This document shows, in pieces, positions 14,872 through 46,076 of a stretch of 64,000 nucleotides of DNA. A model generated the notes under the pieces. It was not told where the DNA came from. It saw nothing but the letters and a program-made list of their open reading frames with translations, and did no database searches. How positions within the stretch are numbered: position 1 is the first letter of the stretch; each line of letters starts with the position of its first letter. The DNA is from Selaginella moellendorffii (Eukaryota > Plantae > Lycopodiophyta). The DNA is taken from assembly GCF_000143415.4 (NCBI RefSeq), contig NW_003314342.1, positions 782,173 to 846,172 on the forward strand, read 5' to 3'. The position numbers and the translations under genes were made by a program.

Positions 14872-16204
14872 GGACAATAGGGCTTTTGGAAGAATATTCT
14901 CAAGAGTCTTGGAGTAGTTCTTCCTGGATTTCTTGCAAACTTTACTGAGATGCCTGGAAAGGTCAGGTATGTGACAAACTTCAGTTTCTCATGAGAGACC
15001 AGTTGGACGATAGCCAAATTGTTTATAGATAGCTAGGGTTAAATACAAATGAAGAGTTGAAATAGATGTTTACTAAGAGCAGCTTTCTCAGTAAACTAGT
15101 ATGGTCTGCAAACATGCTAAGAAAGTGTTAGATTATCTTGGGATGGATTAGCTTATGCAAAAAATTACTTAGCACTCAACCACATTACATCCTTTACTGA
15201 TTGGTTAAAAAGGTCATGGTCATGAGGCATTTACATATTATAGATATTAACATTCATGTGGAAAAGATAAATTTAGTTTTTGGTGTTTAACATGAATAAA
15301 CATAAGGTATTACATTATCATATATATTAGACATTAGTAAAATTCAATATAAAACTGTTTCCATCTATATATCACTAGTTTGACTTTAAAAAACACAAAA
15401 GATAAAAATTATAAAAAGATAAACATAAATTTATATATAATCAGAAATTTTTAATTTTTTTTCTATTTCTCATTATTGAACTCAATTAAACTTTTGGAAA
15501 GTGATTTTAATAGTAAATAGAAAACAGTGATTTTTGACATATAACTTAAAAATAAACAAACACATGTTTGACATTTAACACTGCTCCAACTTTGGAATCC
15601 AGTCAATATTTATTTTTATAAAATATAATATTTTATTCTCATAACAGGAATAGCATTTTTGGATTGAAATAATAACTTAACATACTATCTACTTTTAAAT
15701 GAAACTTAATATTTAATAAAAATATTTATTTTGAAATTATTATTATTTCTTGGTATGAGAGTTTAATTAGCTTGATATTATAAAACATAAACTAGATTAA
15801 ATGAGTAAAAATAATTTTTCTTTTTTATTTTGTAAAACTTTTATTATCTAATTTTATACTTGATATATTTAGCCAATATAGCAATCTATAATTAAAATAA
15901 AAATTATGTGTAAATTATTTATATCAGAAATATATGTTACAATTTTTAAATTTTGAATTAAGTAAAATATATACCTAAAAGGTAATTTTATACTTTATCT
16001 CGGTAAAAAACGCAATTATTTACCATCAATATTTTTAGGGTTCTTCCGAAGGGGTGCCACGATCAGCTGGCAATTCCAAAGATATTACACACTGGATCCT
16101 TGTCTGGACGCGCTTCCGCGGGTTCTCCTATTCTCGGATTTGTCTGCGCATGAGGCCTAGATAAACTTGCCGAGCTCGCATTCTTTCCAGGTAAACATTC
16201 AAAG

Positions 16205-17430
16205 ATGGTGTTCTTTGCGAGATTTCTAGCTCTAGCATGTCTTGTAGCGATTGCTGTGGCCGATCCAGCGGCACCTCCTCCAGGAAATTAGTATGCATCA
16301 ATGCTTCCTCATTGCTTCTCTCTATGTTTATGTTGATCGTAGGAGTTTTTCTTCTTTCGAATGCTAAACTTTGTTTCTCTGGGTGGATTCCAGCGCGTAC
16401 CTCCGGGTGAGAGGCCGTGGCAAGCAGCTCTACGCTTGCAATGCTGCGTCCAAGGCCTGGGAGTTCGACGTTGCTTGGGCGGATTTGTTCTACCCCTCGG
16501 ACAAAAACTATACGCGGCGAATTGGAGTTCACTATTTCCTCCAGTTTCCAGATGCCAACGGTGGACGACCGTCCTGGTCGCTGTTTAGAAGTCCTGGAGA
16601 TCCAGACTCTGCGACTCCATCGCTCACAGTCACAGGTACCTTGTCGCTTGTTCTATCTTTTGCTGTGCTTTGTGGTTTTTATATGTTTTTTCTTTCGCTG
16701 TTTTCTGCCAGGCAAAGTGCTGGACAAAACTCCATCAGCCGGAAACATCGATGCACTGCTCCTCCAAGTTACTTCTTTCAGTGGACGCACAGGCATTTCT
16801 TATATCCAGCGATATCCAGTGAGTGGAGGAGTGGCTCCTGCGGCCAACCTTTGCACCAAAGCGGGAGACACTCTAGCCGTGGACTACGAGAGCGACTACG
16901 CCTTCTTCTCCCAGCTCAAGAGGCCTGCCGCTTCGGGTCTTTCAAACGCAACAAGCAACAGTACCAAGGTCGTGGCATCCTACTTTGGCGAGGGATTCCA
17001 GCTCTACACTTACGAGAATTCTTCCTGGGTTCTAAAGGGAGCCTCGGCCTCCCTGAGCTCTGTTCCCGGACGAGAGATTGTTGGGAGTCACTATTTCCTT
17101 TATCAAGCTGATGCGAGCGGCGGACAGCCGACTTGGACCATCTACTCTCCGACTTACAGTCGTGTGACTGGCAAAGTGACCGAGAAAGTTTCAAGCGACA
17201 ACTCGAGTGTTCCGGTGCTTCGTCTAGAGAGGACCAGCAGCAGCGGAGAGCCGTAAGTTTTCTATCTGCGAGTTGAGATTCTAAGAGTTTCCACTTTCAG
17301 GGAAGGAATAGCGCGTGCAACGAGGATCGAGCGGTTGTCCCCGCGTGGAGGTCTGCCACCCACCAATCCTGGCAAAAATGGTGAAAGATTCAGATCGCCA
17401 TACACATCAATCTACTGGTTCTATGCGTGA
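16205..17430 (+). CDS. Secreted protein with two tandem DUF3455-like domains, copy 1 (332 aa)
   Basis: Exons 16205-16290, 16394-16635, 16712-17252, 17301-17430 give 999 nt in frame. Signal peptide, then twice the pattern GxQLYx..W..AxL..GxHYF..PxW..VTGKV..R..GG.P..Y...Y.F. Confidence 0.85.
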
Positions 17431-17543
17431 GAGGGCACTTGACAGGTTTCACTGACAGAAGAAATAAGACCTTACTGTGTTGTTCCATTCAATTTTTCTA
17501 ATCCAAACTTGCGTTTCAGTCACAAAGATGGTGCCGTGCCGAG

Positions 17544-18830
17544 CTAGCTCGACGAGAACTTCCTCATGGAAGACGAGCTAGAGAGCACGTACGAAGCAGA
17601 GACCTCGGGCTCCAGTTGGAGCGTCCTCTCGGCGGCAACCGAGGCCTGCCGCTCGCTCCCCTTGCAAACTTTGTTGCTCGAGTCGAGCAGGATCGTCCAA
17701 GGCACGGGACCTGGCTCAAACGGCATGACATCGACGAGCTCCTGCGCTAGCTGAAGCTGCCCCGACCGTCCCAGCAGATCCACCACGCACACAAAGTGAT
17801 CCACGCTCGGCCTCAAACCAAAGTCCTCCTGCATGCTCTGGAAGAGCTCGAGTCCTCTACTCAGCATTCTGGCATGGCTACAGACCGAGAGCACGCTCAC
17901 AAACACGATTTCGTCGGCCGCAGCGCCGCCCTCCAACAGCATGAGCTCGAAAGTCCGGATGGCCGCCTGGGACTCGCCAGCTTGAGCGTAAGAAGACCAT
18001 GGCGTCGTAAGAAGCTACGTCCCTGTGGAGTGGAGGGATTTGCCAGAAGACAGCCTCGGCACTGGGCAGTGATCCACACTTCTTGAACATCTGGACGAGA
18101 GCAGTGTGAAGCTTCTGAGAGTGGAGCCTCGCCTGGATGATCTCCTCGTGGACAAGCTTGGCTTCTCCGAGAGAAGTGACCCCATTGATGAGGCTGACGA
18201 AGGTGACATGGTTGGCTTCCACGCCTCCCAAGTCCATTCCAGCGAGAGCTTGGATGGCCTCGCGGCAGTGGTGGTTCTCTCCAAAGGCCGTGATCAGTGC
18301 AGTCCAGCAAAAAGCGTTGCGGAGGCTCGCTCGGGTTTGATCGAAGACTGTGACGGCGTCCACCAGGCTGCGGCATTTCCCATACATGCTCACCAGCAAG
18401 ACCTGGATGCGTTGGTTGCGGTCGAGGCCTTGATCGATGATCTCAGCGTGGAGCGCTCGTCCGGTTTCAAGCTCGCCAGCATCAGCGCAGGCTCCCAGGG
18501 CTGCGATGAAAGTTATCTCGTTTGGTTTGATCCTCTCGAGCTGCATGGTTTTCAGCAGCTCCAGAGCTCGGCCATTGAGATTAAACACCAAGAGCATCAA
18601 GTTCCAAGTGATGATGTTTCGTCTCTTTGCGGGCATGGAATCAAACACTTGCTTTGCACGAAATGCTTCCCTGTTTTGGGCATATGCAGTGATCATAGCA
18701 GTCCAAGCCATTTCATCCTTGTCATGGATTACATCAAAGATCTTCCTTGCCTTTTTGACAAGACCATTGTGAGAAAACATTTGTAACATTGTAGTTTGGG
18801 CAATTATGTCCTTTTCAGGCATGAGAGCAA
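17544..18830 (-). pseudogene. PLS-class (E-type) PPR pseudogene, 5'-truncated, frameshifted
   Basis: Near-identical to the 3' two-thirds of 44067-46076. 2-bp deletion near 17990. 5' end replaced by a retroelement fragment at about 18832. Confidence 0.88.
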
Positions 18831-18831
18831 A

Positions 18832-19840
18832 CTACTGTTAAATACTTCTTCCTCAATTGAGTTTTATTTCAGCATTCTTATCTAGAGTGGATTTTTTTGG
18901 ATAATGGTCCCGTATTTATAGTTGAGTTTTGATGTCTCGGTTAAGGATATGCTATACTTTCACAAGTGCTTATCATCCACAGTCAAACAGTTTGGTGAAA
19001 TGGCTTGTTCAGACATTCAAAAGAATGATCATAAAGTATGTGAATTTTCAGCATTCAGATTGAGATGGTTATTTACTGTTTTTTCGATATGTATATATCA
19101 CAGGGGTGTAAAGTTTTGTTGATGTTTCACCATATAAATTTTTATATGGTCATGATCCAATATTATCAATGGAGCTGGGTTTACCTTCGCGATTGTCATA
19201 AGTTGCCAATACTAGGTCATGGGATTAGTATTTGACAAACATTCTTCCACTTGTCCAAGTAGAATTTACTAAACATTTAGGCCACATACAAATGGGACAA
19301 CAACGGCATTACCACTCCTATCATTGTCCACCTGCAGAGTATAAAATGGATGACTTGATGTTAATCTGTTTTCCTCATCTTACAGTATGTGGTTTATCTA
19401 AGGGGCTCTTTGCTCAGTGGAAATGACCGTATTAAGTGTTGTAGCAAGTTGGACCGCAAGTATATGAGGTTTGGGGTGACGTCCAACAAACTAATCCTCC
19501 AGAAATTGTGCATGTGTAGCAGTTAAAATGCTTTATACAAAGGGATCAAGAACAATTAATACCACCTATAGATTCCAATGCTTTCTTTTGATGTTCCTCC
19601 AGATCCCCTCCCATTTACAAAAGAACTTTGATAGTTTTCCATTATTTTGAGAGGAGGGGATGATGTGAAGTCCCAAGTGTATGGCTATAATGCCGTATAC
19701 TAATATTAGTGTAGTGGAATTTTAGTAGCCATCGGATTTGTTTCAATCCAGACCACTCGCTCTTATATATAAGCTAGGGTTTTTGAGTTAATTGATATGT
19801 ATATTTTTTGTATTCCCTTTCCATATTCCATGCATTCACA
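18832..19840 (+). mobile_element. Ty3/gypsy 3' fragment: degenerate integrase, PPT, LTR 19664-19840
   Basis: Relics FTSAYHPQSNSLV and SPYKFLYGHDP; PPT GAGAGGAGGGGA; LTR TGTGAAG...TTCACA. Confidence 0.85.
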
Positions 19841-20028
19841 CATCTATAAAAAATACAAAAAATAAAAACTATAAAAAAATAAATATAAATTTATATATAA
19901 TCAAAGATTTCTAATTTTTTTCAATATCTCATTATTGAACTCAATTAACCTTTTGGAAAGTGATTTTGATAGTAAATATATAGCTTAAAAATAAACAAGC
20001 ACATATTTGACATTTAACATTACCCCAA

Positions 20029-20222: not shown

Positions 20223-20852
20223 CCCAACTTTAGAATCCAGTTAATATTTAGTTTTGTAAAATATAATATTTTATTCTCATAACAAAAATAATATTTTAAG
20301 ATGTATGGATTACAATAATAGCTTAACATTTTATCTACTTTGAAATGAAAATTAAAAACGTATTAATATTTTTAAAACATTTAATTTAAATTTTTTATTA
20401 TTTCTTGGTATGAGAATTTAATTATCTTGATATTATAAAACATAAACTAAATTAAATGAGTGAGAATAATTTTTTTTTGTTTTGTAAATGTTTTATAATC
20501 TAATTTTATACTTGATATATTTAGCCAATTAGCGATCTATAATTAAAATAAAAATTATGTGTAAATGATTTATGTCAGAAATATGCCATTATGATGTTGA
20601 ATTAAGTGAAATATATACTAAAGGGTATAATTATACTTTATCTCGGTAAAAATGCAATTATTTACCTTCAATATTTTTAGGGTTCTTCCGAAGGAGTGCC
20701 ACGATCAGCTGGCAATTCCAACGATATTACACACTGGATCCTTGTCTGGACACGCTTCAACCTCCGCGGGTTCTCCTATTCTCGGATTTGTCTGCGCACG
20801 AGGCCTAGATAAACTTGCCGAGCACGCATTCTTTCCAGGTAAACATTCAAAG

Positions 20853-22070
20853 ATGGTGTTCTTTACGAGATTTCTAGCTCTAGCATGTCTTGTAGCGATT
20901 GCTGTGGCCGATCCAGCGGCACCTCCTCCAGGAAATTAGTATGCATCAATGTTTCCTCATTGCTTCTCTCTATGTTTATGTTGATCGTAGGAGTTTTTCT
21001 TCTTTCGAATGCTAAACTTTGTTTCTCTGGGTGGATTCCAGCGCGTACCTCCGGGTGAGAGGCCGTGGCAAGCAGCTCTACGCTTGCAATGCTGCGTCCA
21101 AGGCCTGGGAGTTCGACGTTGCTTGGGCGGATTTGTTCCTCACCTCGGACAAAAACATTACGGGGCGAATTGGAGTCCACTATTTCCTCCAGTTTCCAGA
21201 TGCCAACGGTGGACGACCGTCCTGGTCGCTGTTTAGAAATCCTGGAGATCCAGACTCTGCGACTCCATCGCTCACAGTCACAGGTACCTTGTCGCTTGTT
21301 CTATCTTTTGCTGTGCTTTGTGGTTTTTATATGTTTTTTGTTTCGTGCCAGGCAAAGTGCTGGACAAAACTCCATCAGCCGGAAACATCGATGCACTGCT
21401 CCTCCAAGTTACTTCTTTCAGTGGAGCCACAGACAGTTCTTATATCCAGCGATATCCAGTGAGTGGAGGAGTGGCTCCTGCGGCCAACCTTTGCACCAAA
21501 GCGGGAGACACTCTAGCCGTGGACTACGAGAGCGAGTACAGATTCTTCTCCCAGCTCAAGAGGCCTGCCGCTTCGGGCCTTTCAAACGCAACAAGCAACA
21601 GTACCAAGGTCGTGGCATTCTACTTTGGCGAGGGATTCCAGCTCTACACTTACGAGAATTCTTCCTGGGTTCTAAAGGGAGCCTCGGCCTCCCTGAGCTC
21701 TGTTCCCGGAGGAGAGATTGTTGGGAGTCACTATTTCCTTCGTCAAGCTGATGCGAGCGGTGGACAGCCGACTTGGGCCATCCACTCTCCGACTTACAGT
21801 CGTGTGACTGGCAAAGTGACCGAGAAAGTTTCAAACGACAACTCGAGTGTTCCGGTGCTTCGTCTAGAGAGGACCAGCAGCTGCGGAGAGCCGTAAGTTT
21901 TCTATCTGCGAGTTGAGATTCTAAGAGTTTCCACTTTCAGGGAAGGAATAGCGCGTGCAACGAGGATCGAGCGGTTGTCCCCGCGTGGAGGTCTGCCACC
22001 CACCAATCCTGGCAAAAATGGTGAAAGATTCAGATCGCCATACACATCAATCTACTGGTTCTATGCGTGA
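20853..22070 (+). CDS. Secreted tandem DUF3455-like protein, copy 2 (diverged paralog)
   Basis: Same 4-exon structure and splice sites as copy 1, intact frame, about 18 amino-acid differences. Confidence 0.85.
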
Positions 22071-22180
22071 GAGGGCACTTGACAGGTTTCACTGACAGAA
22101 GAAATAAGACCTTACTGTGTTGTTCCATTCGATTTTTCTAATCCAAACTTGCGTTTCACATTCACAAAGATGGTGCCGAG

Positions 22181-23450
22181 CTAGCTCGACGAGAACTTCC
22201 TCATGGAAGACGAGCTAGAGAGCACGTACGAAGCAGAGACCTCGGGCTCCAGTTGGAGCGTCCTCTCGGCGGCAACCGAGGCCTGCCGCTCGCTCCCCTC
22301 GCAAACTTTGTTGCTCGAGTCGAGCAGGATCGTCCAAGGCACGGGACCTGGCTCAAACGGCATGACATCGACGAGCTCCTGCGCTAGCTGAAGCTGCCCC
22401 GACCGTCCCAGCAGATCCACCACGCACACAAAGTGATCCACGCTCGGCCTCAAACCAAAGTCCTCCTGCATGCTCCGGAACAGCTCGAGTCCTCTACTCA
22501 GCATTCCAGCATGGCTACAGACTGAGAGCACGCTCACAAACACGATTTCGTCGGCCGCAGCGCCGCCCTCCAACAGCATGAGCTCGAAAGTCCGGATGGC
22601 CGCCTGGGACTCGCCAGCTTGAGCGTAGGCCGAGACCATGGCGTCGTAAGAAGCTACGTCCCTGTGGAGTGGAGGGATTTGCCAGAAGACAGCCTCGGCA
22701 CTGGGCAATGATCCACACTTCGTGAACATCTGGACGAGAGCAGTGTCAAGCTTCTGAGAGTGGAGCCTCGCCTGGATGATCTCCTCGTGGACAAGCTTGG
22801 CTTCTCCCAGTGAAGTGACCCCATTGACGAGGCCGACGAAGGTGACATGGTTGGCTTCCACGCCTTCCAAGTCCATTCCAGCGAGAGCTTGGATGGCCTC
22901 GCGGCAGTGGTGGTTCTCTCCAAAGGCCGTGATCATCGCAGTCCAGCAAACAGCGTCGCGGAGGCTCGCTCGGGTTTGATCGAAGACTGTGACAGCGTGC
23001 ACCAGGCTGCGGCATTTCCCATACATGCTCACCAGCAAGACCTGGATGCGTTGGTTGCGGTCGAGGCCTTGATCGATGATCTCGGGGAGCGCTCGTCCGG
23101 TTTCGAGCTAGCCAGCATCAGTGCAGGCTCCCAGCGCTGCGATGAAAGTTATCTCGTTTGGTTTGATCCTCTCGAGCTGCATGGTTTTCAGCAGCTCCAG
23201 AGCTCGGCCATTGAGATTAAACACCGAGAGCATCGAGTTCCAAGTGATGATGTTTCGTCTCTTTGCGGGCATGGAATCAAACACTTGCTTTGCACGAAAT
23301 GCTTCCCCGTTTTGGGCATATGCAGTGATCATAGCAGTCCAAGCCATTTCATCATTGTCAAGGATTACATCAAAGATCTTCCTTGCCTTTTCGACAAGAC
23401 TGTTGTGAGAAAACGCTTGTAATTATGTCTTTTTTAGGCATGAGAGCAAA
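22181..23450 (-). pseudogene. PLS-class (E-type) PPR pseudogene, 5'-truncated, premature stop
   Basis: Paralog of 44067-46076. GAG>TAG at 23108-23110. Same 5' truncation point as the 17544 copy. Confidence 0.88.
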
Positions 23451-24465
23451 CTATTGTTAGATACTTTTTCATTAATTGAGTAGTGTTTCAGGATTCTTAT
23501 CCGGAATGGATTCTTTTGGATAATGGTCTTGTATTTATAGTTGAGGCATTTTATGTTTTGATGTTTCGGTTAGGGATACGCCACACTTTCACAAGTGCTT
23601 ATCATCTATAGTTAGACGGTTTAGTAAAATAACTTGTTCGGACATTCAAAAGAATGATCGTGAAGTACGTGAACTTTCAGCATTCGGATTAGAATAGTTA
23701 TTTACCGTATTTTTGGTATGTATATGTCACAGGGGTGTAGAGTTTTGTTGATGCTTCACCATATAAATTTTTATATGGTCATGATCTAATATTATTAATG
23801 AAGTTGGGTTTACCTTCACGATTGTCACGAGTTGCCAATGCTAGGTCATAAGATTAATATTTGACAAACATTCTTCCATTTGTCCAAATAGAGTTTACCA
23901 AACACTTAGGCTGTATACAAGTGGGACAACAACGACACTATAACTTTTATCATTGTCCACATGCGAAGTATAAAGTGGATGACTTAGTGTTAATTTGTTT
24001 TCCCCATCTTATAATATGTGGTTTATCTAAGGGGCTCCTTGCTCAGTGGAAAGGACTGTATCAAGTGTTGTGGCAAGTTGGACCACAAGTATATAAGGTT
24101 TGGGATGATGTCCAACAGACTGATCCTCCTGAAATTATGTATGTGCAGCAGTTAAAACGCTTTATACAAAGGGATCAGGAATAATTGATACCACTTACAG
24201 ATCCACCAATGCCTCCTCCTGACGTTCCTCCAGATCCCCTCCTGTCTACAAAAGAACCTTGATAGTTTTCCATTATTTTGAGAGAAGGGGATTATGTGAG
24301 GTCCAAGTGTACAGCTACAATGCCGTATACTAATATTAGCGTAGTGGGATTTTAGTAGCCATTGGATTGGTTTTAATTTAGACCACCTTATATATAAGCT
24401 AAGGTTTTTGAGTTAATTGATATGCATATTTTCTGTATTCCCTTTCCATATTCCATGCACTCACA
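23450..24465 (+). mobile_element. Ty3/gypsy 3' fragment with LTR 24295-24465 (paralog of 18832-19840)
   Basis: Colinear with 18832-19840; PPT GAGAGAAGGGG; LTR TGTGAGG...CTCACA. Confidence 0.85.
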
Positions 24466-25293
24466 TGTCTATATATCACTAATTTGACTTTAAAAAACAC
24501 AAAAGATAAAAACTATAAAAAAATAAACATAAATTTATATATAATCAGAGATTTCTAATTTTTTTCAATATCTTATTATTGAACTCAATTAACCTTTTGG
24601 AAAGTGATTTTGATAGTAAATATATAACTTAAAAATAAACAAGTACATAATTGACATTTAACACTACTCCAACTTTGGAATCCAGTCAATATTTAGTTTT
24701 GTAAAATATAATATTTTATTCTCATAACAGAAATAACATTTTAAGATGTATGGATTACAATAATAGCTTAACATTTTATCTACTTTGAAATGAAAATTAA
24801 AAACGTATTAATATTTAATAAAAATTGTAATTTGAAATTATTATTATTTTTTGGTATGAGAATTTAATTATCTTGATATTATAAAACATAAACTAAATTA
24901 AATGAGTGAGAATAATTTTTTTTTTTTTTGTAAATGTTTTATAATCTAATTTTATACTTGATATATTTAGCCAATATAGCAATCTATAATTAAAATAAAA
25001 GTTATGTGTAAATTATTTATATCAGAAATATGCCATTATGATGTTGAATTAAGTGAAATATATACTAAAAGGTATAATTATACTTTATCTCAGTTAAAAC
25101 GCAATTATTTACCTTCAATATTTTGAGGGTTCTTCCGAAGGAGTGCCAGCTGGCAATTCCAAAGATATTACACACTAGATCCTTGTCTAGACGCGCTTCA
25201 ATCTTTGTAGATTCTCCTATTCTCGGATTTGTCTGCACATGAGGCCTGGATAAACTTGCCGAGCTCACATTCTTTCCAAGTAAACATTCAAAT

Positions 25294-25353
25294 ATGGTGT
25301 TCTTTGTGAGATTTCTAGCTCTAGCATGTCTTGTAGCGATTGTTGTGGCCGAT
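25294..25353 (+). pseudogene. Truncated DUF3455-like copy (promoter plus signal peptide only)
   Basis: Upstream region 24466-25293 matches the other copies; MVFFVRFLALACLVAIVVAD is followed by an abrupt switch to TRIM sequence. Confidence 0.85.
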
Positions 25354-25633
25354 ACACAATGGAAGGATTGATAAATTGAGTGCAAAAATGGAGGTGTTGG
25401 TTCCCCTTGGCTCAATAAGGGTTGTTAGTCAATAATTAATGAGGACATTGACATCTCTGAAAAGGGGGGTGAGTGTAACATATGTGATCATGGGATGAGA
25501 TTTAGATATATTAACACCGTGGATCCTTGGAACTTTGGGGGATAAATGGGGATAAAATAGCCACTAAGGGCTCTTTCATTAAGCAATTGCCCTTTTTGCA
25601 ATTGGCTTAAGGGGAGAAAGATAAGGTGTGTTA
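25354..25633 (+). mobile_element. TRIM 3' half (internal segment, PPT, LTR 25474-25633)
   Basis: Reverse complement of the TRIM unit at 40700-40930; PPT GAAAAGGGGGGTGAG precedes TGTAACA. Confidence 0.75.
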
Positions 25634-26920: not shown

Positions 26921-27459
26921 AAATTCCACGGTGATAGTATATCCAAATCTCATCCCATGATCACATGCGCTACACTCACCCCCCCTTTTGTGTAGACCAG
27001 CTAAAATTCCACGGTGATAGTATATCCAAATCTCATCCCATGATCACGGTGGATACCTTCGTCCGTGGATACTCCACACAAGAGGAAGGACATACGCATG
27101 GATGCCCAATACGTACGATTTCAAATTTAGGGGTAGGAATATACCTTGCTCAAGGGTATATTATACTTTTAAGTAACCACTAATCAATGGGAATCGAACC
27201 CATGCCATTTACTCCGATACCAACTTGTGAGACACAAAATCCCTGGGCCCCAAAGTGGAGCCGGAAGGGTGCCACGTGGTAGTGGCCGAAGCGAGAGCCA
27301 AACGAGCGTAACACGTTTGGACCAAAAGCTCCGACTTGAAAAGTCAAGAGCGGGAGTGGAACTCCCAACGAAGTGCTCGAGGAATGAGCATGAAACGAGC
27401 CATAGGCGAGGCTCCAAATAGGGACCCAAAAGGACCAACACATGACACGTGGAAGTGTC

Positions 27460-27900
27460 TGAGATGGAGTCCGAGGCGGACCCAAAGTGGAGTCCGAGAT
27501 GGAGTCCAAGATGGACCCGAGATGGAGTCTGAGATGGAGTCCGAGATGGACCCGAGATGGACCCGAGATGGGATCCGAGATGGACCCGAGATGGACCCGA
27601 GATGGAGTCCGAGAAGGACCCGAGATGGAGTCCGAGGTGGAGTCCGAGATGGAGTCCGAGATGGACCCGAGATGGAGTCCAAGCTGGAGTCCGAGATGGA
27701 CCCGCGATGGAGTCCGAGATGGACCCGAGATGGAGTCCAAAGTCGAGACCGGGACCAAGACCGAGACCAGGACCGAGACCGAGACCGAGACCGGGACCGA
27801 GACCGAGACCGAGGCCGAGGCCGAGTCCGAGTCCGAGTCCGAATCCGAGTCCGAGTCCGAGTTCGAGTCCGAGTCCGAGTCCGAGTCCGAGTCCGGAGCC
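27460..27900. repeat. Compound minisatellite in 5' LTR (GAGATGGACCC / GAGATGGAGTCC, then GAGACC / GAGTCC hexamers)
   Basis: 11/12-mer and 6-mer tandem units directly visible. Confidence 0.92.
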
Positions 27901-30900
27901 TGAGAGGGTGAAAGCCCAAAGCGTTCGTCTCCCAGACCCTGGGGGGTTTGGTGAGCTCCAAAAGTATAGAAGGGGGAGGACTGCAGTGGAGCCAGTTTGG
28001 CCAGGAAAGGCCAGTTTGGCCCAGGAAGGCCGGACCCAGTGTTGGGTGATGAGCTGCCCACTGGGAAGTCCAAGACTAGAGTGAACACAGACCGACAAGC
28101 GGGGTAGCTTAGTGAAGTGTTCAAGAGCCGGCTCTAGTTCCCCCGGGAGATCGACTGGCCGATGCTCCCAGTCCAAGTGTGGGTGGCACTACCTACTTGG
28201 ATACCAGGCGTGGCTCAACGGAACCTCGCTCTAAGCCCATGGCTAGAGCACCTAAAGGCGATAGGTGGGGAGAGTACCCAGGTGGCTCACGTAAGGCCAC
28301 GGTGTTCCGAAATGTTGTCCCAAAGGCCCAGACTGTGGAAAGGAAGAGGAGCAGTCCTCTGGGGTAGTGACCAAGGACACAGTCGTGTGGTGAGGAAGTC
28401 CCAGAGGACCGTGGGACTTAGTGGTCGGGCCTGTGGGTCTCGATCCAGTGGCAGTGTTGGCAAACACGGCCAAGGGCAGAAAGGGACTTAGTGGGGACTG
28501 ACAGAGGGATATTGGGGAAGGCTAATCCCCATGTCAGTGGGCATCCTAAGGATGCTAAGGAGTGGATCTGGGATGATCACTCATGGATGGATGGCCCAGT
28601 CTTTGAGTGACGGGACTGGGATGCAGGTGCTGTCAGACCATCGGTGTGACCAAGGTGAATGGGCATGGCCTTAGCGTAACGGGCCGGTACGTCGGTGGTA
28701 CCTTGGGGTGTCGATCATGGGATCGGACACGTGGAGCACTTGGACCAAGTGCTAAGGTTAAGTGGCATGGATGCCATTCTCGGGGCTGGCAAGCCCCAAG
28801 TTCTGAGTTGGACTTATGGAGGTTGTGAATGAGACTCCTCCAAGTGGTTGAAGGTGTGGTTAAGTGACTAAAGTGAAATGGAAAAATTAGTCGCTTACAA
28901 TTTGGTATCGGAGCTGTTCCTTAGTCCGACTTTTATTGGTGCTCAAGTATATCATCACTGGTGTTGGCAACGGAAGGTCCGAGAAGTGGGCCTATCCTTG
29001 AGGAGTAGCAGGTCGGGAAGACATGGCTCTCCATTACAGTTCATGTGTGAACTTGTAGACAAGGTGGTGGATAGAAAATGGGCCAATAATGGAACGACTT
29101 TGGGATCTTGGGAACAGTGCAAGGTTTTCCTCATTGAGTTGAGGAGGTGATCCAGATGAGCGTTTGACTCAGCAAATGGGCCAATGTAGTTGTGGTAAAC
29201 AACTAAAGTTGGGATCACAGGAAAGATAAAGACTCCAAAGCAATAAGGGAGTCACAAGATTATCCTCATATAGTTGAGGTTGGTGCTCATGAATGTGAGA
29301 CCAAAAGTAATAACCATAGGAGGTCAAATACGGAAAAGGACTCAAGTCCTTGAAATGGTAGCCGGGGCTACCTTTAATAAATGCTGGAACAACCCAAGGA
29401 GTTGGGGGGTGTACTTAGAGATGAGTTGGTATTCTCATCACATGGACAAGTAGTCCTAAGGGGCAGAGGTTGCCCCAGAGAACAAAAACAAGTGTCAGAG
29501 TAACATTTGTGAAAATAGTCCTTCTGAGTAGGACAGGAATGCAGGAAGTGTATTCCAGTGAGCTAGTGCCTCACAAGTGGGACCTTACGGGTCTGTGGAT
29601 GAACCAAGTCCAAAACTGCTGGATGACTCAAATAGAGTCAAGGAAAGGTCCTAAAGGGACTGATTGAAGCATTTGGACTGAGGTGTGTTGTACCCCATGA
29701 AGGATGGGGGGGGGGGGATCATAGGATCCAAGGATGAGAATAGAGGGTATCTCATCAATGGCAAAATGTGCCATGCTAAAGTTATGGGAAAGGTGTTCCC
29801 AGAAGAAAACAACTTTGACACAAAGTTGTGTGTGACCTCTATGGTGCAGTGCTAACAGATGGTTGGCATGAGAAACAGCGGTGTTAGTCTTGGCAAAGAC
29901 TTAAACACGAAGGGGAAGTGTCATAGAGGTAGGCTCGTGTAGCCGATGGTGTGGAGACACCAAATGTGCCAAGGTGTGATACCTTGAGGCTATGTTGGTG
30001 GGTTCATGAGAACCCCTTGCCAAAGGAATCCCAATGGAAATGGGAATGGCATAGCCTAAGCTGCAGAGCATGCAGTTGGAGTGTGGTGACCCAGATAATG
30101 ATGGAGGTGTGAAAGCACCAAGCAATGAGTTGTAAGACTTGACAAATATGAGGCAACTAAGCAAGAGGTGCAAAATAACTGGTTAAACGGGTAGAAGGTA
30201 GCTACCCAAGACTTCTAGCATAGGGAAGTCGGATATACCCTTACGGGGGATAAGTTGCTTACGTTGCGATATAGTAAGTCAATGTCATAAAAGGAAATAC
30301 TCATTGTCAAGAAAGCCATCATTGGGACACCCGAACACTCTAGAACACCAGAAAGTGGTGTTTAATGGCGCGAGGGCAATGGATAAAGCCCAAGGGACTA
30401 AGTCCCTAGCGAATGATGGATAGAAGGTGCTATCCAAATGTCCAAGGTTGCGGAGACAGGAGAGGATTGTCTACCCAAGTTGGACAAAGCCAAGAATGGA
30501 ATTTTGGCAAGGCTAGTGATGGGCATGTAAAGACCCATAAGCAACAATATAATCCCAGTGTGTGGGATTATAAGGTGAGTATACCCGGATTGAGGAACCA
30601 CTCCCTGGGCTATTGGGTAGGTTCATCCCTAAGAATACTTGCTAAGGCATGATAGAAAGTGCAAAGCTATCCTCCTAGTCTGGAGGAGAATGACCGAAGG
30701 GAAGGTGTGAAGCCAAAAGCAAGAAGTAAGGGGATAGAACCGAACCACAGGAATTGACGGGCATAACCAAGGTTGGTTATGCCAGCTGGGAGTGGAGAAT
30801 CAAGTGGGGGCTCGAGGGTGTTGCCGCTAGCAACCGTGATGCCATGGAGAGTCTAAAATATGGAATTGTCCATGTTAGACTATGTGGCAATTGGAAAGCT

Positions 30901-33239
30901 TGCAAGAAGGGAGGCCTTGGCAAGCTGAGGGACAGAGTTCCTTCAAGGTTCCCAAACACGATTCTAGGTAGCTTAGTACCTAGAAAGGCCAAGTGTAAAT
31001 GGTTCATGGAACGCGCAAAATCAGAGTGGCGCAGCAGAAGCGTAGTCTTGAAGCTTGCCATGAGGCGAGGCTAGCAAGATTAGGGAAGTAGTTCCCGAGT
31101 GTTCAAAGAGAGGGCTTTGAACGAAAGTCGATGGTTAAGGACTTTCACGCTTATACAGGAACCATGTTACAATGGTCGGAGGACTTGCCAAGTGAGATTG
31201 GCACGTCGGGGGAACAAAGACCCTAGTTGAAAGTGATAACTTCAAAAAGGGTGGGCCATGGGGCCGAGCATGGAGGAGTCCATGCATGATCACAGACATG
31301 TCAAGTGAGAGGACTTGGCAGTGTGGAGGAACTAGGTTCCTAAGCTGTGATCTATAGCGCGCTTTAAAAATAGGTTGGTGCACCGGCGTGGGGAGTCACG
31401 CCAGGCATCTTGTGTGATGCCGTCCGTAGATGCATATACGGAGGTTGGGTTCGAGTCCCGACCCTCTAGTGCTTGGGTTCAAGTCCCAAATCACTAGGGC
31501 GTGGTGATGGTTTGGAATATGAGGACACTCATATTTCGGTGGTCATGGACTCTCAGTGGGGAGACTGGTTTGGGCACACCGCCAAGCGAGGGATGCCTCG
31601 GAGTCGTGATGCACGGTTAGATTGCTTAGTGTGAAAGCTCGGCATATCTAACTTGAACACTTTGGTGCACGTGGCACCAAGGACGTGGTGAGTGAGATGG
31701 GGACACCTAATCTCAGTTGCTATGGACCCTTGGCCGGAAGGGCTGGCTTGGGCGCACCGCCAAGTGTGGGGGATGCCCCCGGGGTCGTAGTTAACAAGTT
31801 AAAGGTCTGGAAGACCTAGAACCTATTGGCAAACCTGTTAAGGTGCCAAGGTGACATCACTAGGTGATCTTGTGGCTAAATAAGGATAAGGTCCTTGTTT
31901 GGGCTAAGGAATAAGGTTCCTAGTTCAAAGTGTTGATTTGAACTATTGATGATGGTGTGGCTTGGTCAAGGTGACCAAGTGGGAAAAGCATCTTAGGGAA
32001 ATGAGCTATGTCATTGCGATGGCATAGTGTGTCCAAGGAAAGTAGTCTCTAAAGAGACCCATAGGACGGTCACAAAGTTGGGCTGTGGATAGAGCCCACT
32101 GCAGAAGATGCTAAAGAGACTTACTAGGGGTGAACACTCTAGTCTTGGCAAAGCAGAGCCTTTGCTAGGGAATCAAAAGAATACCTCAAGGAGGGAGGTA
32201 GAGATTCAGTGTTGCTTGGTGCAACAATCAACGGATAGGAGCAAAAGATGAGTGGCCAAGATAGGGCCGTGGAATCCCTTGGAAGGAATCCAAGTGGCAA
32301 AGTTAGGCGAGGAACACTAATGTGTTGGACGCTAAACAATTGTGGGAAAGGAAGCGAGTTTCCAAGGATGGATTCCGAATTGCTCCGGTTTGGCGAAAGG
32401 GGAAGCTCCGAGGGAGGGAGCGGTAAAGTAGCCAAATGATAGGGCCATGGACAGCCCTAGCACAAAGTATGATAACTGGAACTTAGTGCCCAAGGTGGCA
32501 CGAAATAAAAGAGAGGATGATGGTGCCCTCAAGTAGAGAACTTCCTAGGATGAGGGAGTGAAGTTGCACAATATGTGCAATGCAAGGTGTTGGAGACACC
32601 TAGGGAATTGACTTCCAGAAGTCAAAGAGTAAAAGTTCCAAGGTGCAAACGTTCAATCAATGGAAATTGAGACTACTCGAGAAGGAGTAGTGGTATTGAC
32701 TTAGAGAAGGTTCTCTAAGAGGTTTAGCAAGAACTAAATCAATAAAAGGAGAGAACCACTGCATGTGGTCTAATCAGTCTCTAAGTTGGAGAGACTACCC
32801 TCCTTAGAGGATGGGAAAGGCATGGAGAGCCTTTGGTGTCAAACCATTGACGAGTATGGAGAAGGCATGGTGAGCCTTCAATGTCAAACCATTGACGAAT
32901 ATTGGCTAGGTGCCAAGGATGGAAATGGTAACACATGCGGGTGTTACTTTATAAAATGGTTTACCGTTCGATGAGGACATCGAACTTCGTCTATGGGTGG
33001 TGGAGTTGTGAGACACAAAATCCCTGGGCCCCAAAGTGGAGCCGGAAGGGTGCCACGTGGTAGTGGCCGAAGCGAGAGCCAAACGAGCGTAACACGTTTG
33101 GACCAAAAGCTCCGACTTGAAAAGTCAAGAGCGGGAGTGGAACTCCCAACGAAGTGCTCGAGGAATGAGCACGAAACGAGCCATAGGCGAGGCTCCAAAA
33201 AGGGACCCAAAAGGACCAACACATGACACGTGGAAGTGT

Positions 33240-33662
33240 CTGAGATGGAGTCCGAGGCGGACCCAAAGTGGAGTCCGAGATGGAGTCCGAGATGGACCCG
33301 AGATGGACCCGAGATGGGATCCGAGATGGACCCGAGATGGACCCGAGATGGAGTCCGAGAAGGACCCGAGATGGAGTCCGAGGTGGAGTCCGAGATGGAG
33401 TCCGAGATGGACCCGAGATGGAGTCCGAGCTGGAGACCGAGATGGACCCGAGATGGAGTCCGAGATGGACCCGAGATGGAGTCCGAGATGGACCCGAGAT
33501 GGAGTCCGAAGTCGAGACCGGGACCAAGACCGAGACCAGGACCGAGACCGAGACCGAGATTGGGACCGAGACCGAGACCGAGGCCGAGGCCGAGTCCGAG
33601 TCCGAGTCCGAATCCGAGTCCGATTCCGAGTTCGAGTCCGAGTCCGAGTCCGAGTCCGGAGC
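33240..33662. repeat. Same compound minisatellite in 3' LTR
   Basis: Same units with a different unit order and number. Confidence 0.92.
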
Positions 33663-40106: not shown

Positions 40107-41625
40107 GGAGGGGGTGCTGTCAGGAATCCCCCAATTCTTGCCACATTCCTAACTCTTGCCGGATTCCTGACCTGCAGACCACATTCCTGACTCTCGAGAC
40201 ACTTCCCTATTCCTGACTCTCGAGACACTTCCCGATTCCTGAGTCTCGAGCCACATTCCTGATGATGATGTGGCGCCTCCTCAACCTCAGCTATATTTAG
40301 GCCGTCCTCGATCCAATAGTGGTGGAGCTTCATCAACCTATAGTATATATAGGTTAGCCTTGTTCCATTTCTCCACAATCTGAATCAACGCCAGTCTAAG
40401 GCCTTTTCTTTGTTTCCACTAGCTTTTCTCTTTTTGTCTTTTTGCATTTCCCAGTCTTGATCTTGTCAGGGGTCTTGACATCTCTCTCCCCTTAAGCCAA
40501 CTGGAAAAGGGGCAATTGCTTGATGAGAGAGCCCTTAGTGGCTATTTCATCCCCATTTATCCCCCAAGGTTCCAAGGATCCACGGTGACAGTATATCCAA
40601 ATCTCATCCCATGATCATATGGGCTACACTCACCCCCTAGCTTTTCTCTTTTTGTCTTTTTGCATTTTCCAGTCTTGATCTTGTCAGGGGTCTTGACATC
40701 TCTCTCCCCTTAAGCCAACTGGAAAAGGGGCAATTGCTTGATGAGAGAGCCCTTAGTGGCTATTTCATCCCCATTTATCCCCCAAGGTTCCAAGGATCCA
40801 CGGTGATAGTATATCCAAATCTCATCCCATGATCATATGGGCTACACTCACCCCCCCTTCAGAGATGTCAATGCCAAGGGGAACCAGCACCTCCATTTCC
40901 GCACTTAATCTACCAATCCTTCCATTGTGTAAACTAGCTATTCCATGTGAGGCAACTAGTCATCCACCCGTGTCAATGCCAAGGGGAACCAGCACCTCCA
41001 TTTCCGCACTTAATCTACCAATCCTTCCATTGTGTAAACTAGCTATTCCATGTGAGGCAACTAGTCATCCACCCGTACCGCAGTCCCACGATGGATACCT
41101 TCGTCCGTGGATACTCCACACAAGAGGAAGGACGTACGCATGCTCAAGGGTATATTATACTTTTAAGTAGCCACTAATCAATGGGAATCGAACCCATGCC
41201 ATTTACTCCGATACCAACTGTAGCGCACTTTATCTCTCTCCCCTTAAGCCAACTAGAAAAGGGGTAATTGCTTGATGAGAGAGCCCTTAGTGGCTATTTT
41301 ATCCCGATTTATCCCCCAAGGTTCCAAGGATCCACGGTGACAGTATATCCAAATCTCATCCCATGAATGCACTCACCCCCCCAATTAATCTACCAATCCT
41401 TCCATTGTGTAAACTAGCTATTCCATGTGATCCATACCTTCGTCCGTGGATACTCCACACAAGAGGAAGGACGTACGTATGGATGCTCAATACATACGAT
41501 TTTAAATTTAGGGGTAGGAATATACCTTGCTCAAGGGTATATTATACTTTTAAGTAGCCACTAAGGTTCCAAGGATCCATGGTGACAGTATATCTAAATC
41601 TCATCCCATGATCACATGAGCTACA

Positions 41626-42173: not shown

Positions 42174-42732
42174 AACTCAATTAAAATTTTGGAAAGTGAT
42201 TTTGATAATAAATAGAAAACAATGATTTTTGACATATAACTTAAAAATAAACAACACATGTTTGACATTTAACATTGCTCCAACTTTGGAATCCAGTCAA
42301 TATTTATTTTTATAAAACATAATATTTTATTCACATAACAGGAATAAGATGTATGGATTGAAATAATAGCTTAACATATTATCTACTTTTAAATGAAACT
42401 TAAAAACGTTTTAATATTTAATAAAATATTTATTTTGAAATTATTATTATTTCAGCAATATGAAATATGCATGCGTAATATGTTACAATTTTTAAATTTT
42501 GAATTAAGTGAAATAAACACCTAAAAGGTATAATTATACTTTATCTCGGTGATACCTTCAATATTTTTAGGGTTCTTCCGAAGATCAGTTGGCAATTCCA
42601 AAGATATTACACACTGGATCCTTGTCTGGACGCGCTTCAACCTCCGCGGGTTCTCCTATTCTCGGATTTGTCTGCGCATGAGGCCTAGATAAACTTGCCG
42701 AGCTCGCATTCTTTCCAGGTAAACATTCAAAG

Positions 42733-43956
42733 ATGGTGTTCTTTGCGAGATTTCTAGCTCTAGCATGTCTTGTAGTGATTGCTGTGGCCGATCCAGCGGC
42801 ACCTCCTCCAGGAAATTAGTAAGCATCAATGCTTCCTCATTGCTTCTTTATGTTTATGTTGATCGTAGGAGTTTTTTTTCTTTCGAATGCTAAACTTTGT
42901 CTCTCTGGGTGGATTCCAGCGCGCACCTCCGCGTGAGAGGCCGTGGCAAGCAGCTCTACGCTTGCAATGCTGCGTCCAAGGCCTGGGAGTTCGACGTTGC
43001 TTGGGCGGATTTGTTCTACACCTCGGACAAGAACTATACGCGGCGAATTGGAGTCCACTATTTCCTCCAGTTTCCAGATGCCAACGGTGGACGACCGTCC
43101 TGGTCGCTGTTTAGAAGTCCTGGAGATCCAGACTCTGCGACTCCATCGCTCACAGTCACAGGTACCTTGTCGCTTGTTCTATCTTTTGCAGTGGTTTGTG
43201 GTTTTTATATGTTTTTTCTTTCGTTGTTTTCTGCCAGGCAAAGTGCTGGACAAAACTCCATCAGCTGGAAACATCGATGCACTGCTCCTCCAAGTTACTT
43301 CTTTCAGTGGACGCACAGGCATTTCTTATATCCAGCGATATCCAGTGAGTGGAGGAGTGGCTCCTGCGGCCAACCTTTGCACCAAAGCGGGAGACACTCT
43401 AGCCGTGGACTACGAGAGCGAGTACGCATTCTTCTCCCAGCTCAAGAGGCCTGCCGCTTCGGGCCTTTCAAACGCAACAAGCAACAGTACCAAGGTCGTG
43501 GCATCCTACTTTGGCGAGGGATTCCAGCTCTACACTTACGAGAATTCTTCCTGGGTTCTAAAGGGAGCCTCGGCCTCCCTGAGCTCTGTTCCCGGACGAG
43601 AGATTGTTGGGAGTCACTATTTCCTTTATCAAGCTGATGCGAGCGGCGGACAGCCGACTTGGACCATCTACTCTCCGACTTACAGTCGTGTGACTGGCAA
43701 AGTGACCGAGAAAGTTTCAAACGACAACTCGAGTGTTCCGGTGCTTCGTCTAGAGAGGACCAGCAGCAGCGGAGAGCCGTAAGTTTTCTATCTGCGAGTT
43801 GAGATTCTAAGAGTTTCCACTTTCAGGGAAGGAATAGCGCGTGCAACGAGGATCGAGCGGTTGTCCCCGCGTGGAGGTCTGCCACCCACCAATCCTGGCA
43901 AAAATGGTGAAAGATTCAGATCGCCATACACATCAATCTACTGGTTCTATGCGTGA
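42733..43956 (+). CDS. Secreted tandem DUF3455-like protein, copy 3 (intact)
   Basis: Same 4-exon structure; protein nearly identical to copy 1. Confidence 0.85.
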
Positions 43957-44066
43957 GAGGGCACTTGACAGGTTTCACTGACAGAAGAAATAAGACCTTA
44001 CTGTGTTGTTCCATTCGATTTTTCTAATCCAAACTTGCGTTTCACATTCACAAAGATGGTGCCGAG

Positions 44067-46076
44067 CTAGCTCGACGAGAACTTCCTCATGGAAGACGAG
44101 CTAGAGAGCACGTACGAAGCAGAGACCTCGGGCTCCAGTTGGAGCGTCCTCTCGGCGGCAACCGAGGCCTGCCGCTCGCTCCCGTCGCAAACCTTGTTGC
44201 TCGAGTCGAGCAGGATCGTCCAAGGCACGGGACCCGGCTCAAACGGCATGACATCGACGAGCTCCTGCGCTAGCTGAAGCTGCCCCGACCGTCCCAGCAG
44301 ATCCACCACGCACACAAAGTGATCCACGCTCGGCCTCAAACCAAAGTCCTCCTGCATGCTCCGGAAGAGCTCGAGTCCTCTACTCAGCATTCCAGCATGG
44401 CTACAGACTGAGAGCACGCTCACAAACACGATTTCGTCCGCCGCAGCGCCGCCCTCCAACAGCATGAGCTCGAAAGTCCGGATGGCCGCCTGGGACTCGC
44501 CAGCTTGAGAGTAGGCCGAGACCATGGCGTCGTAAGAAGCTACGTCCCTCTGGAGTGGAGGAATTTGCCGGAAGACAGCCTCGGCACTGGGCAGTGATCC
44601 ACACTTCGTGAACATCTGGACGAGAGCAGTGTCAAGCTTCTGAGAGTGGAGCCTCGCCTGGATGATCTCCTCGTGGACAAGCTTGGCTTCTCCGAGAGAA
44701 GTGACCCCATTGACGAGGCCGACGAAGGTGACATGGTTGGCTTCCACGCCTTCCAAGTCCATTCCAGCGAGAGCTTGGATGGCCTCGCGGCAGTGGTGGT
44801 TCTCTCCAAAGGCCGTGATCATCGCAGTCCAGCAAACAGCGTCGCGGAGGCTCGCTCGGGTTTGATCGAAGACTGTGACGGCGTCCACCAGGCTGCGGCA
44901 TTTCCCATACATGCTCACCAGCGAGACCTGGATGCGTTGGTCGCGGTCGAGGCCTCGATTGATGATCTCGGCGTGGAGCGCTCGTCCGGTTTCGAGCTCG
45001 CCAGCATCAGCGCAGGCTCCCAGCGCTGCGATGAAAGTTATCTCGTTTGGTTTGATCCTCTCGAGCTGCATGGTTTTCAGCAGCTCCAGAGCTCGGTGAG
45101 GATGGCCATTGAGATTAAACGCCGAGAGCATCGAGTTCCAAGTGACGATGTTTCGTCTCTTTGCGGGCATGGAATCAAACACTTGCTTTGCACGAAATGC
45201 TTCCCCGTTTTGGGCATATGCAGTGATCATAGCATTCCAAGCCATTTCATCCTTGTCAAGGATTACATCAAAGATCTTCCTTGCGTTTTCGACAAGACCA
45301 TTGTGAGAAAACGCTTGCAGCATTGTAGTTTGAGCGACTACGTCCTTCTCAGGCATGAGAGCAAACATCCTCTCCGCATTTGCAATTTCTCCGGCTTTGG
45401 CATACGCAGTGATCATCGCAGTGTAGACGTGAATGTTTGGTTTCTCCATCGCATCAAACAAACGCTTCGCTTCTTCCAGCCGGTTGTGCGCTGCGTAAGA
45501 CGATATCAGAGCACCCCAAGAAACCGGATTTCTTTCAGGCATCCTATCAAACAACTCTTTCGCACGATCAAATTCCCCTTTCTGGGCAAGTGCGGTAAGC
45601 ATCACAGTCCATGCCACTACATTCTTCTCGGGCATTCGATCAAACAGTTCCTGGGCTTGATCCAGGTTCCCATCAGCGGCGTAGCGTTTTATCATCACGA
45701 CCCATGAGACCGGATCTCTCTTGGGCATCGCTTCGAACCACGCTCGAGCGTCGTCCAAGGTTCCATTCTGGGCAATTGCCGAGAGCATGATCGTCCACGA
45801 GAAGACATTGGGTCGGCGGATGCGATCGAAGGCCAATCTGGCCCTTTCCATGTCCCCGCATCTCCCGTAGCTCTGGACGACGAGATTGGCAAGGAAAACA
45901 TTCGTGCTATGGCGACTGCTCAAGACCCTGTCGTGAATCTCGTGAATTTCATTCACCCGGTGGGATTGCGCGGCAGATCGTAGCAGCCCAGCAAAGAAAG
46001 AAACCTCTCCCCGATCACCTCTCAAGTCACCACAAGAGACCTTTAGTGGAAAGGAAGCACAAAGAGAGAAGATCAT
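44067..46076 (-). CDS. PLS-class pentatricopeptide repeat protein with E-like C-terminus, no DYW (669 aa)
   Basis: Intronless ORF with many repeats such as FDRMPEKNVVAWTVML; terminal DHFVCVVDLLGRSGQL...MPFEP..VPW..LL...LEPE.SASYVL; no HxE/CxxC deaminase motif. Confidence 0.92.
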   Translation of the reverse strand: MIFSLCASFPLKVSCGDLRGDRGEVSFFAGLLRSAAQSHRVNEIHEIHDRVLSSRHSTNVFLANLVVQSYGRCGDMERARLAFDRIRRPNVFSWTIMLSAIAQNGTLDDARAWFEAMPKRDPVSWVVMIKRYAADGNLDQAQELFDRMPEKNVVAWTVMLTALAQKGEFDRAKELFDRMPERNPVSWGALISSYAAHNRLEEAKRLFDAMEKPNIHVYTAMITAYAKAGEIANAERMFALMPEKDVVAQTTMLQAFSHNGLVENARKIFDVILDKDEMAWNAMITAYAQNGEAFRAKQVFDSMPAKRRNIVTWNSMLSAFNLNGHPHRALELLKTMQLERIKPNEITFIAALGACADAGELETGRALHAEIINRGLDRDQRIQVSLVSMYGKCRSLVDAVTVFDQTRASLRDAVCWTAMITAFGENHHCREAIQALAGMDLEGVEANHVTFVGLVNGVTSLGEAKLVHEEIIQARLHSQKLDTALVQMFTKCGSLPSAEAVFRQIPPLQRDVASYDAMVSAYSQAGESQAAIRTFELMLLEGGAAADEIVFVSVLSVCSHAGMLSRGLELFRSMQEDFGLRPSVDHFVCVVDLLGRSGQLQLAQELVDVMPFEPGPVPWTILLDSSNKVCDGSERQASVAAERTLQLEPEVSASYVLSSSSSMRKFSSS

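Follow-up and report, generated by a model that had tools for sequence, protein, structure and literature searches.

An excess of amino-acid replacements confined to one young DUF3455 paralog of Selaginella moellendorffii

Copy 2 of a group of closely related DUF3455 genes of Selaginella moellendorffii carries an excess of amino-acid replacements that is specific to its own lineage, exceeds the rate of change in the local neutral DNA and is placed non-randomly in the encoded protein. The best reading of these observations is positive selection on a young paralog, to which a probability of about one half is assigned from the sequence comparisons; we infer that selection was the cause and that the changed sites may form a binding surface or pocket. 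The initial annotation proposed diversifying selection on a binding surface. The part of this proposal that stands is an excess that is confined to one lineage and lies above the neutral rate; recurrent change was found only at sites 135 and 240.

According to the proposed scenario, the 2.8 kb core of the duplicated unit was probably last duplicated or homogenised among three copies before the burst in copy 2. Positive selection would then have caused a run of replacements in copy 2 alone, with copies 1 and 3 remaining under purifying selection. The replacements are at positions that vary in the family, mostly in or beside the loops of both predicted barrels; half of them remove or create Tyr or Arg, several codons have been hit twice and the outcome may have been an altered specificity for a ligand or partner (neofunctionalisation).

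Gene structure and the duplicated region

The copy 2 gene (SELMODRAFT_426271, plus strand, positions 20853-22070) lies in a 64 kb stretch of S. moellendorffii DNA, analysed here as the window, which is eukaryotic, with short GT..AG introns. Its four exons (Table 1) give an uninterrupted translation of 332 aa with neither a stop nor a frameshift in the reading frame, and all its splice sites are intact GT..AG sites. The spliced product is identical to the database protein P0005, and a RefSeq record exists for the gene model. Exon 4 has the same sequence in copies 1, 2 and 3 and is conserved across all distant relatives; the initial description of the frame, the splice sites and the last exon as untouched is thus correct. 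This exon encodes GGLPP...YWFY and covers positions 120-157 of the 157-position DUF3455 profile, i.e. the last 38 positions.

Table 1. Coordinates in the window of the three DUF3455 gene copies and of the surrounding duplicated sequence.
Feature	Position	Strand	Description
Copy 1 (SELMODRAFT_426270)	16205-17430	+	Conservative paralog
Copy 1 exons	16205-16290, 16394-16635, 16712-17252, 17301-17430	+	
Copy 2, exon 1	20853-20938	+	Start codon, signal-peptide-like N-terminus; A5T
Copy 2, exon 2	21042-21283	+	First half of DUF3455 domain 1; Y62L, Y68I, R70G, S95N
Copy 2, exon 3	21352-21892	+	Remainder of domain 1 and larger part of domain 2; DUF3455 E=5e-14; R135A, G137D, I138S, A173R, S199F, R230G, Y240R, T252A, Y254H, S287C; single silent change, at codon 246
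Copy 2, exon 4	21941-22070	+	C-terminal strands of domain 2 and stop codon
Copy 3 (SELMODRAFT_426272)	42733-43956	+	Conservative paralog, polarises changes
Copy 3 exons	42733-42818, 42920-43161, 43238-43778, 43827-43956	+	
Core of the duplicated unit	20604-23376	.	2.8 kb; self-BLAST and sliding divergence profile
PPR gene fragment, unit 2	22181-23347	-	Frameshifted pseudogene; ORFs, PPR Pfam hits, frame analysis
Truncated fourth unit	24669-25356	+	Promoter and ~21 initial codons of exon 1; unrelated sequence beyond

A database word search with the exon-3 frame (window 21285-21890), in which residues 24-202 were scored, led to SELMODRAFT_426270, whose cluster at 90% identity contains six sequences. 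Copies 1, 2 and 3 correspond to P0001, P0005 and P0006 of this cluster, which match their spliced products exactly and are all encoded on a single scaffold of 890 kb. The alternative RefSeq models P0002 and P0003 (XP_024517068.1 and XP_024540715.1) read into intron 3 (21893-21940) and end at an in-frame TAA there, so that exon 4 is omitted; P0002 also has an additional 97-aa N-terminal extension upstream of the signal peptide. Since exon 4 fits the family profile and is conserved in distant relatives, the four-exon model appears to be right and the two RefSeq models truncated; P0002 and P0003 are probably mis-annotations.

Repeat finding and self-BLAST delineated two tandem units (15586-20028 and 20224-24672) and a dispersed copy (42496-45317) that holds only the central part of the unit. 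Identity across the three copies of the core is 97-98%, introns and intergenic DNA included, against ~88% in the flanks of the tandem units, so the core would have been duplicated or homogenised far later than the tandem units arose. This pattern of identities indicates that gene conversion or re-duplication of the core postdates an older tandem duplication. Conversion among the copies could distort the three-sequence tree. The truncated fourth unit carries A5V and confirms that codon 5 began with G in the ancestor; the unrelated repeat that follows its partial exon 1 matches 40480-40931 in inverted orientation.

The core also contains a PLS-type PPR gene on the minus strand, with further copies at 17540-18700 and 44060-45320. 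Its frame is open, for at least 432 codons, solely in copy 3. In units 1 and 2 it is frameshifted, by a 2-bp deletion at the position matching ~22630 in unit 1 and by 3-bp and ~17-bp deletions in unit 2. The pseudogene of unit 2, with 9 private changes over 1194 sites, served as a neutral reference. Its decay fits the main rival explanation of the copy 2 excess, rated as unlikely, namely relaxed constraint or incipient pseudogenisation of a redundant gene, in which chance and some multi-nucleotide mutations (MNMs) give a high N:S ratio; the absence of any stop or frameshift from the copy 2 gene speaks against it.

Elsewhere in the window, direct repeats of 300 nt with 99% identity, LTR-like and 5.8 kb apart, occupy 27457-27761 and 33215-33519. 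The intervals recorded with these repeats also include 27225-33305 and 53368-53679, and there are 23-bp tandem repeat arrays at three places. The ~3.5 kb interior of the element is present twice, at 29798-33204 and, inverted, at 53655-58144, with 81-90% identity.

Domain architecture and predicted fold

Profile comparison with Pfam PF11937 (DUF3455; cut-off 25) gave 100.6 bits for P0005 and 104.7 bits for P0001, with two matched stretches in each. Exon 3 alone scores 53.4 bits and exon 2 alone gives a weak match. Wherever a column is invariant among the other eight relatives, copy 2 has the same residue; it thus retains the DUF3455 motifs, and the domain is not degraded. Residues 1-19, read by eye, comprise a basic residue, a hydrophobic core and an AVA-D junction and constitute a putative signal peptide; the predicted model has a low-confidence helix at residues 4-13.

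The AlphaFold2 model, built from a nine-sequence alignment (mean pLDDT 75), consists of two all-beta domains, ~28-177 and ~196-331, each of which is predicted to be an eight-stranded beta-barrel. When aligned to each other, the two domains are identical at 48/133 positions. A sequence search of the PDB found no match, a Foldseek search of the PDB with the predicted model found nothing at E<=0.001 and the ESM Atlas gave no usable match. Using VIA-align, domain 2 was superposed, with Z of 7.6-8.9 over 102-117 residues (rmsd 2.8-3.7 Å), on small-molecule-binding eight-stranded barrels, including the Diels-Alderases Cyc15, AbmU and PyrI4, pyocyanin demethylase, the dirigent proteins AtDIR6 and PsPTS2 and allene oxide cyclase. 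These barrels differ from copy 2 in sequence (identity 5-12%) and in the lack of a significant Foldseek match. Domain 1 matches the LucK barrel with Z of 7.0. The tool itself describes Z values in the range of all these matches as typical of a common arrangement; the barrel matches of both predicted domains are accordingly a lead and not a classification.

Beyond the close cluster, a search with P0005 found relatives at most 42% identical: P0007 of Diphasiastrum, P0008 and P0009 of Selaginella and two assembly proteins. The double-DUF3455 proteins of lycophytes, i.e. O6H91_12G088800 of Diphasiastrum complanatum and SELMODRAFT_412172 and LOC9634955 of Selaginella, resemble copies 1-3 in having two domains, a similar length and the invariant motifs GxHYF, GG.P.W, GGLPP and YWFY; they differ in sequence (39-42% identity) and in lacking the derived residues of copy 2. 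The occurrence of the two-domain architecture in D. complanatum and in two further Selaginella paralogs (~40%) suggests that the family is old within lycophytes.

Substitution counts and lineage assignment

From a manual comparison of copy 2 with copy 1, the initial annotation reported about 18 codons that change the amino acid and about 3 synonymous differences. The codon table of the three-copy alignment gives exactly 18 nonsynonymous codons (5, 62, 63, 68, 70, 95, 135, 137, 138, 171, 173, 199, 230, 240, 252, 254, 271 and 287) and 3 synonymous ones (74, 185 and 246). The five codons with two-base changes that had been listed (TAC>CTC, TAT>ATT, CGC>GCC, GCC>AGA and TAT>CGT) are all there, as are all the peptide clusters quoted for copy 2.

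With copy 3 as the third sequence, P63T, D171E, S271N and the change in the third base of codon 173 belong to the copy 1 lineage. The private changes of the copy 2 lineage amount to 15 replacement codons (20 nt) and 1 silent change, those of copy 1 to 3 replacement and 3 silent changes and those of copy 3 to 2 and 3, respectively. Pairwise Nei-Gojobori dN/dS is 0.27 for copies 1 and 3, which are under purifying selection. For copies 1 and 2 it is 2.14, which alone is not significant (Fisher P=0.15); significance is reached only once the changes are assigned to the copy 2 branch. When each codon is counted as one event, N:S for copy 2 is 15:1 (P=0.064). The dN/dS ratios of copy 2 are fragile because they rest on only one silent change, and the nominal P values are optimistic because the gene was chosen for its extreme look among thousands of windows. 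Both this tiny silent count and the post hoc choice of the gene fit relaxed constraint.

Rate tests

A purpose-written three-taxon maximum-likelihood branch model (GY94 type, F3x4) gave omega=8.8 for copy 2 and 0.35 for the background. Omega=1 for copy 2 was rejected (2dlnL=8.58, P=0.003), and so was a single omega for all branches (P=0.001). MNMs are a known source of false branch-specific signals (bioRxiv 10.1101/165969). When a two-base instantaneous rate was added, the fit improved strongly (2dlnL 12-17), omega of copy 2 fell to 5.3 and the test against omega=1 became borderline (2dlnL=3.87, P=0.049), as relaxed constraint accompanied by MNMs would lead one to expect. A dN/dS significantly above 1 is found with the standard branch model, not with the pairwise estimate and only marginally with the MNM-aware test.

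The local DNA provides a second reference. Outside the CDS, copy 2 has the lowest number of private changes in the core (16, against 30 and 25 in the other two copies); within the CDS it has the highest (21, against 6 and 5). The relative-rate chi-square test gives P=1.4e-4 by bases and 2.5e-3 by events. An overall acceleration of unit 2 is ruled out by its having the fewest private changes outside the CDS among the units. On the copy 2 branch, 20/748 replacement sites have changed (2.7%), against 8/793 upstream, intron, 3' flank and silent sites (1.0%; P=0.011) and against 17/1987 sites when the baseline includes the frameshifted PPR region (0.86%; P=5e-4). By bases, replacement sites have thus changed 2.7-3.2 times faster than the local neutral DNA, whereas relaxed constraint predicts that the two rates are equal. 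Counting by codon events yields P=0.08 with the strict baseline of non-coding and silent sites and 0.014 with the PPR region added; when sites 95 and 230 are also set as ancestral, the values are 0.16 and 0.043. The event-based results of 0.064, 0.08 and 0.16 fit relaxed constraint.

The spectrum of copy 2 comprises 11 transitions and 10 transversions, and its Arg codons changed by C>G transversion. Both features rule out a mutational bias of the repeat-induced or CpG type.

Doublets and placement of the changes

Tandem doublets account for 5/16 events in the copy 2 CDS, for 0/16 in the non-coding and pseudogene DNA of the same lineage and for 3/78 across all remaining classes and lineages (P=0.003 and P=0.02 for the comparisons). 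All 5/5 doublets of copy 2 affect codon positions 1-2 (P=0.004 if phase were random), whereas under relaxed constraint doublets of random phase would be expected, in non-coding DNA as well. As the doublets respect codon phase and exon boundaries, they point to successive replacement hits and not to a mutational process; the MNM-corrected test is probably over-conservative for copy 2.

Two of the doublets are swaps of adjacent bases (TA>AT and CG>GC), which would be compatible with an assembly or base-calling artefact in a multi-copy region, such as a haplotype mosaic or swapped bases. The region is a recent multi-copy repeat, and the S. moellendorffii assembly contains two haplotypes. This origin of the changes is nevertheless highly improbable: 3/5 doublets are not swaps, and errors would not spare the introns, the silent sites and the 1.2 kb of adjacent pseudogene.

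The other eight members of the family show no variation at 74 columns, and 0/14 changes in the mature protein touch these (P=0.02). Along the sequence the changes form clusters, four of the gaps between them being no longer than 2 residues (permutation P=0.017), and 7/14 strike an ancestral Tyr or Arg, which account for 40/312 residues (P=6e-4). Relaxed constraint predicts hits on invariant columns, no clustering and no bias towards Tyr and Arg; the avoidance of invariant columns, the clustering, the targeting of Tyr and Arg and the phase-locked doublets argue for selection and not decay. The predicted secondary structure places 10/14 changes in loops or strand ends, against an expected 54%, an enrichment that is not significant (P=0.14). 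By family column composition, 11/14 are at variable, mostly polar columns and 3 at columns of a hydrophobic class. The latter are radical changes at columns where every relative has a hydrophobic residue: I138S (I/V/A), A173R (A/V/L) and Y254H (Y/F). These, together with S287C, which gives copy 2 a third, unpaired cysteine, are what relaxed constraint could produce.

Changes in equivalent loops of both domains, as initially described, are found only approximately. The alignment of domain 1 with domain 2 maps site 230 to 66, sites 252/254 to 91/93 and site 287 to 133, i.e. 2-4 residues off the domain-1 changes at 68/70, 95 and 135, and sites 240 and 199 are without a counterpart. A test for enrichment of the changes at domain-equivalent positions was not significant.

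Fourth copy and possible donors

A fourth close copy, P0004 (SELMODRAFT_419604, 332 aa), is located on a different scaffold of 1.66 Mb. It has 10-12 private amino-acid changes. Among them are R135H and Y240P+Q241R, which coincide with sites changed in copy 2 or adjoin them; two base changes are needed for Y240P. Three states are therefore present among the four close copies both at site 135 (R/A/H) and at site 240 (Y/R/P). Four changed sites are common to copy 2 and P0004 (P=0.001), and at two of these the state itself is shared, N95 and G230; the overlaps with different states alone give P=0.05. The shared N95 and G230 may simply be ancestral.

That copy 2 and a gene on another scaffold have N95 and G230 in common, and that the core is so much more similar than its flanks, would also be expected if older differences of copy 2 had been kept by selection against homogenising gene conversion and had survived as small islands. 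This variant of the selection reading is improbable. It would need many very short conversion tracts that spared 13-15 isolated codons, although silent sites a few bases away (codons 62-70 and 135-138) were homogenised, and the introns and flanks of copy 2 have no excess of private change.

Clustered changes, five of them two-base changes, could likewise be left by micro-conversion or templated mutation if an unsampled donor existed, whether a diverged paralog, a pseudogene or a haplotype. Such a source is quite improbable, since a diverged donor would import silent differences, of which there is just one. At the outset, conversion from a distant paralog had been named as a competing explanation; the derived residues of copy 2 were sought in the distant relatives P0007-P0011 and found in none, which rules out these proteins, the only other annotated relatives and no more than 42% identical, as donors. 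A template for the derived patches within the window is excluded too, each derived 11-mer of copy 2 being unique in the 64 kb. Copy 2 also did not receive the residues next to sites 95 and 230 from P0004.

Functional and evolutionary implications

The literature mentions DUF3455 almost solely in lists of fungal secretomes and effectors. UvDUF1 of Ustilaginoidea virens is described as a virulence factor that is secreted and elicits immunity, MoCEP7 of Magnaporthe oryzae as a candidate effector with a signal peptide, and a Marchantia DUF3455 gene is regulated by KANADI; no biochemical activity of DUF3455 members is reported in this literature. UvDUF1 and MoCEP7 belong to the same family as copy 2 and share with it a signal-peptide-like N-terminal segment. 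Fungal members are experimentally secreted, and the likeness of the Selaginella protein to them is through the Pfam family and not through direct alignment. Unlike them, copy 2 belongs to a plant, a lycophyte; its gene has three introns and encodes DUF3455 twice in tandem.

The host-microbe arms race that was first suggested for copy 2 is speculation, its sole support being the role of fungal DUF3455 proteins as secreted effectors or elicitors. A more specific form of the idea would make the lycophyte double-DUF3455 proteins apoplastic barrels that bind ligands or effectors, and copy 2 an arms-race specificity variant with Tyr/Arg-rich recognition loops in both barrels and recurrent sites 135 and 240; it has a slim chance of being right.

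Positive selection on copy 2, the preferred reading, would have parallels in secreted and defence families of plants, in which one paralog has omega >1 after duplication, its sisters remain constrained and substitutions gather at variable positions, most of them in loops, as they do here. The present case differs from these families in comprising only three or four sequences, too few for a site model to be fitted. Young duplicates with dN/dS >1 are common in plant genomes, and support for the adaptive divergence of copy 2 is moderate.

The family also has an interest beyond lycophytes, as its fungal members are secreted effectors that trigger plant immunity. Copies 1 and 2 are 95% identical and differ almost only at 15 positions that look selected; the pair would therefore guide work to the functional surface or pocket of the DUF3455 fold.
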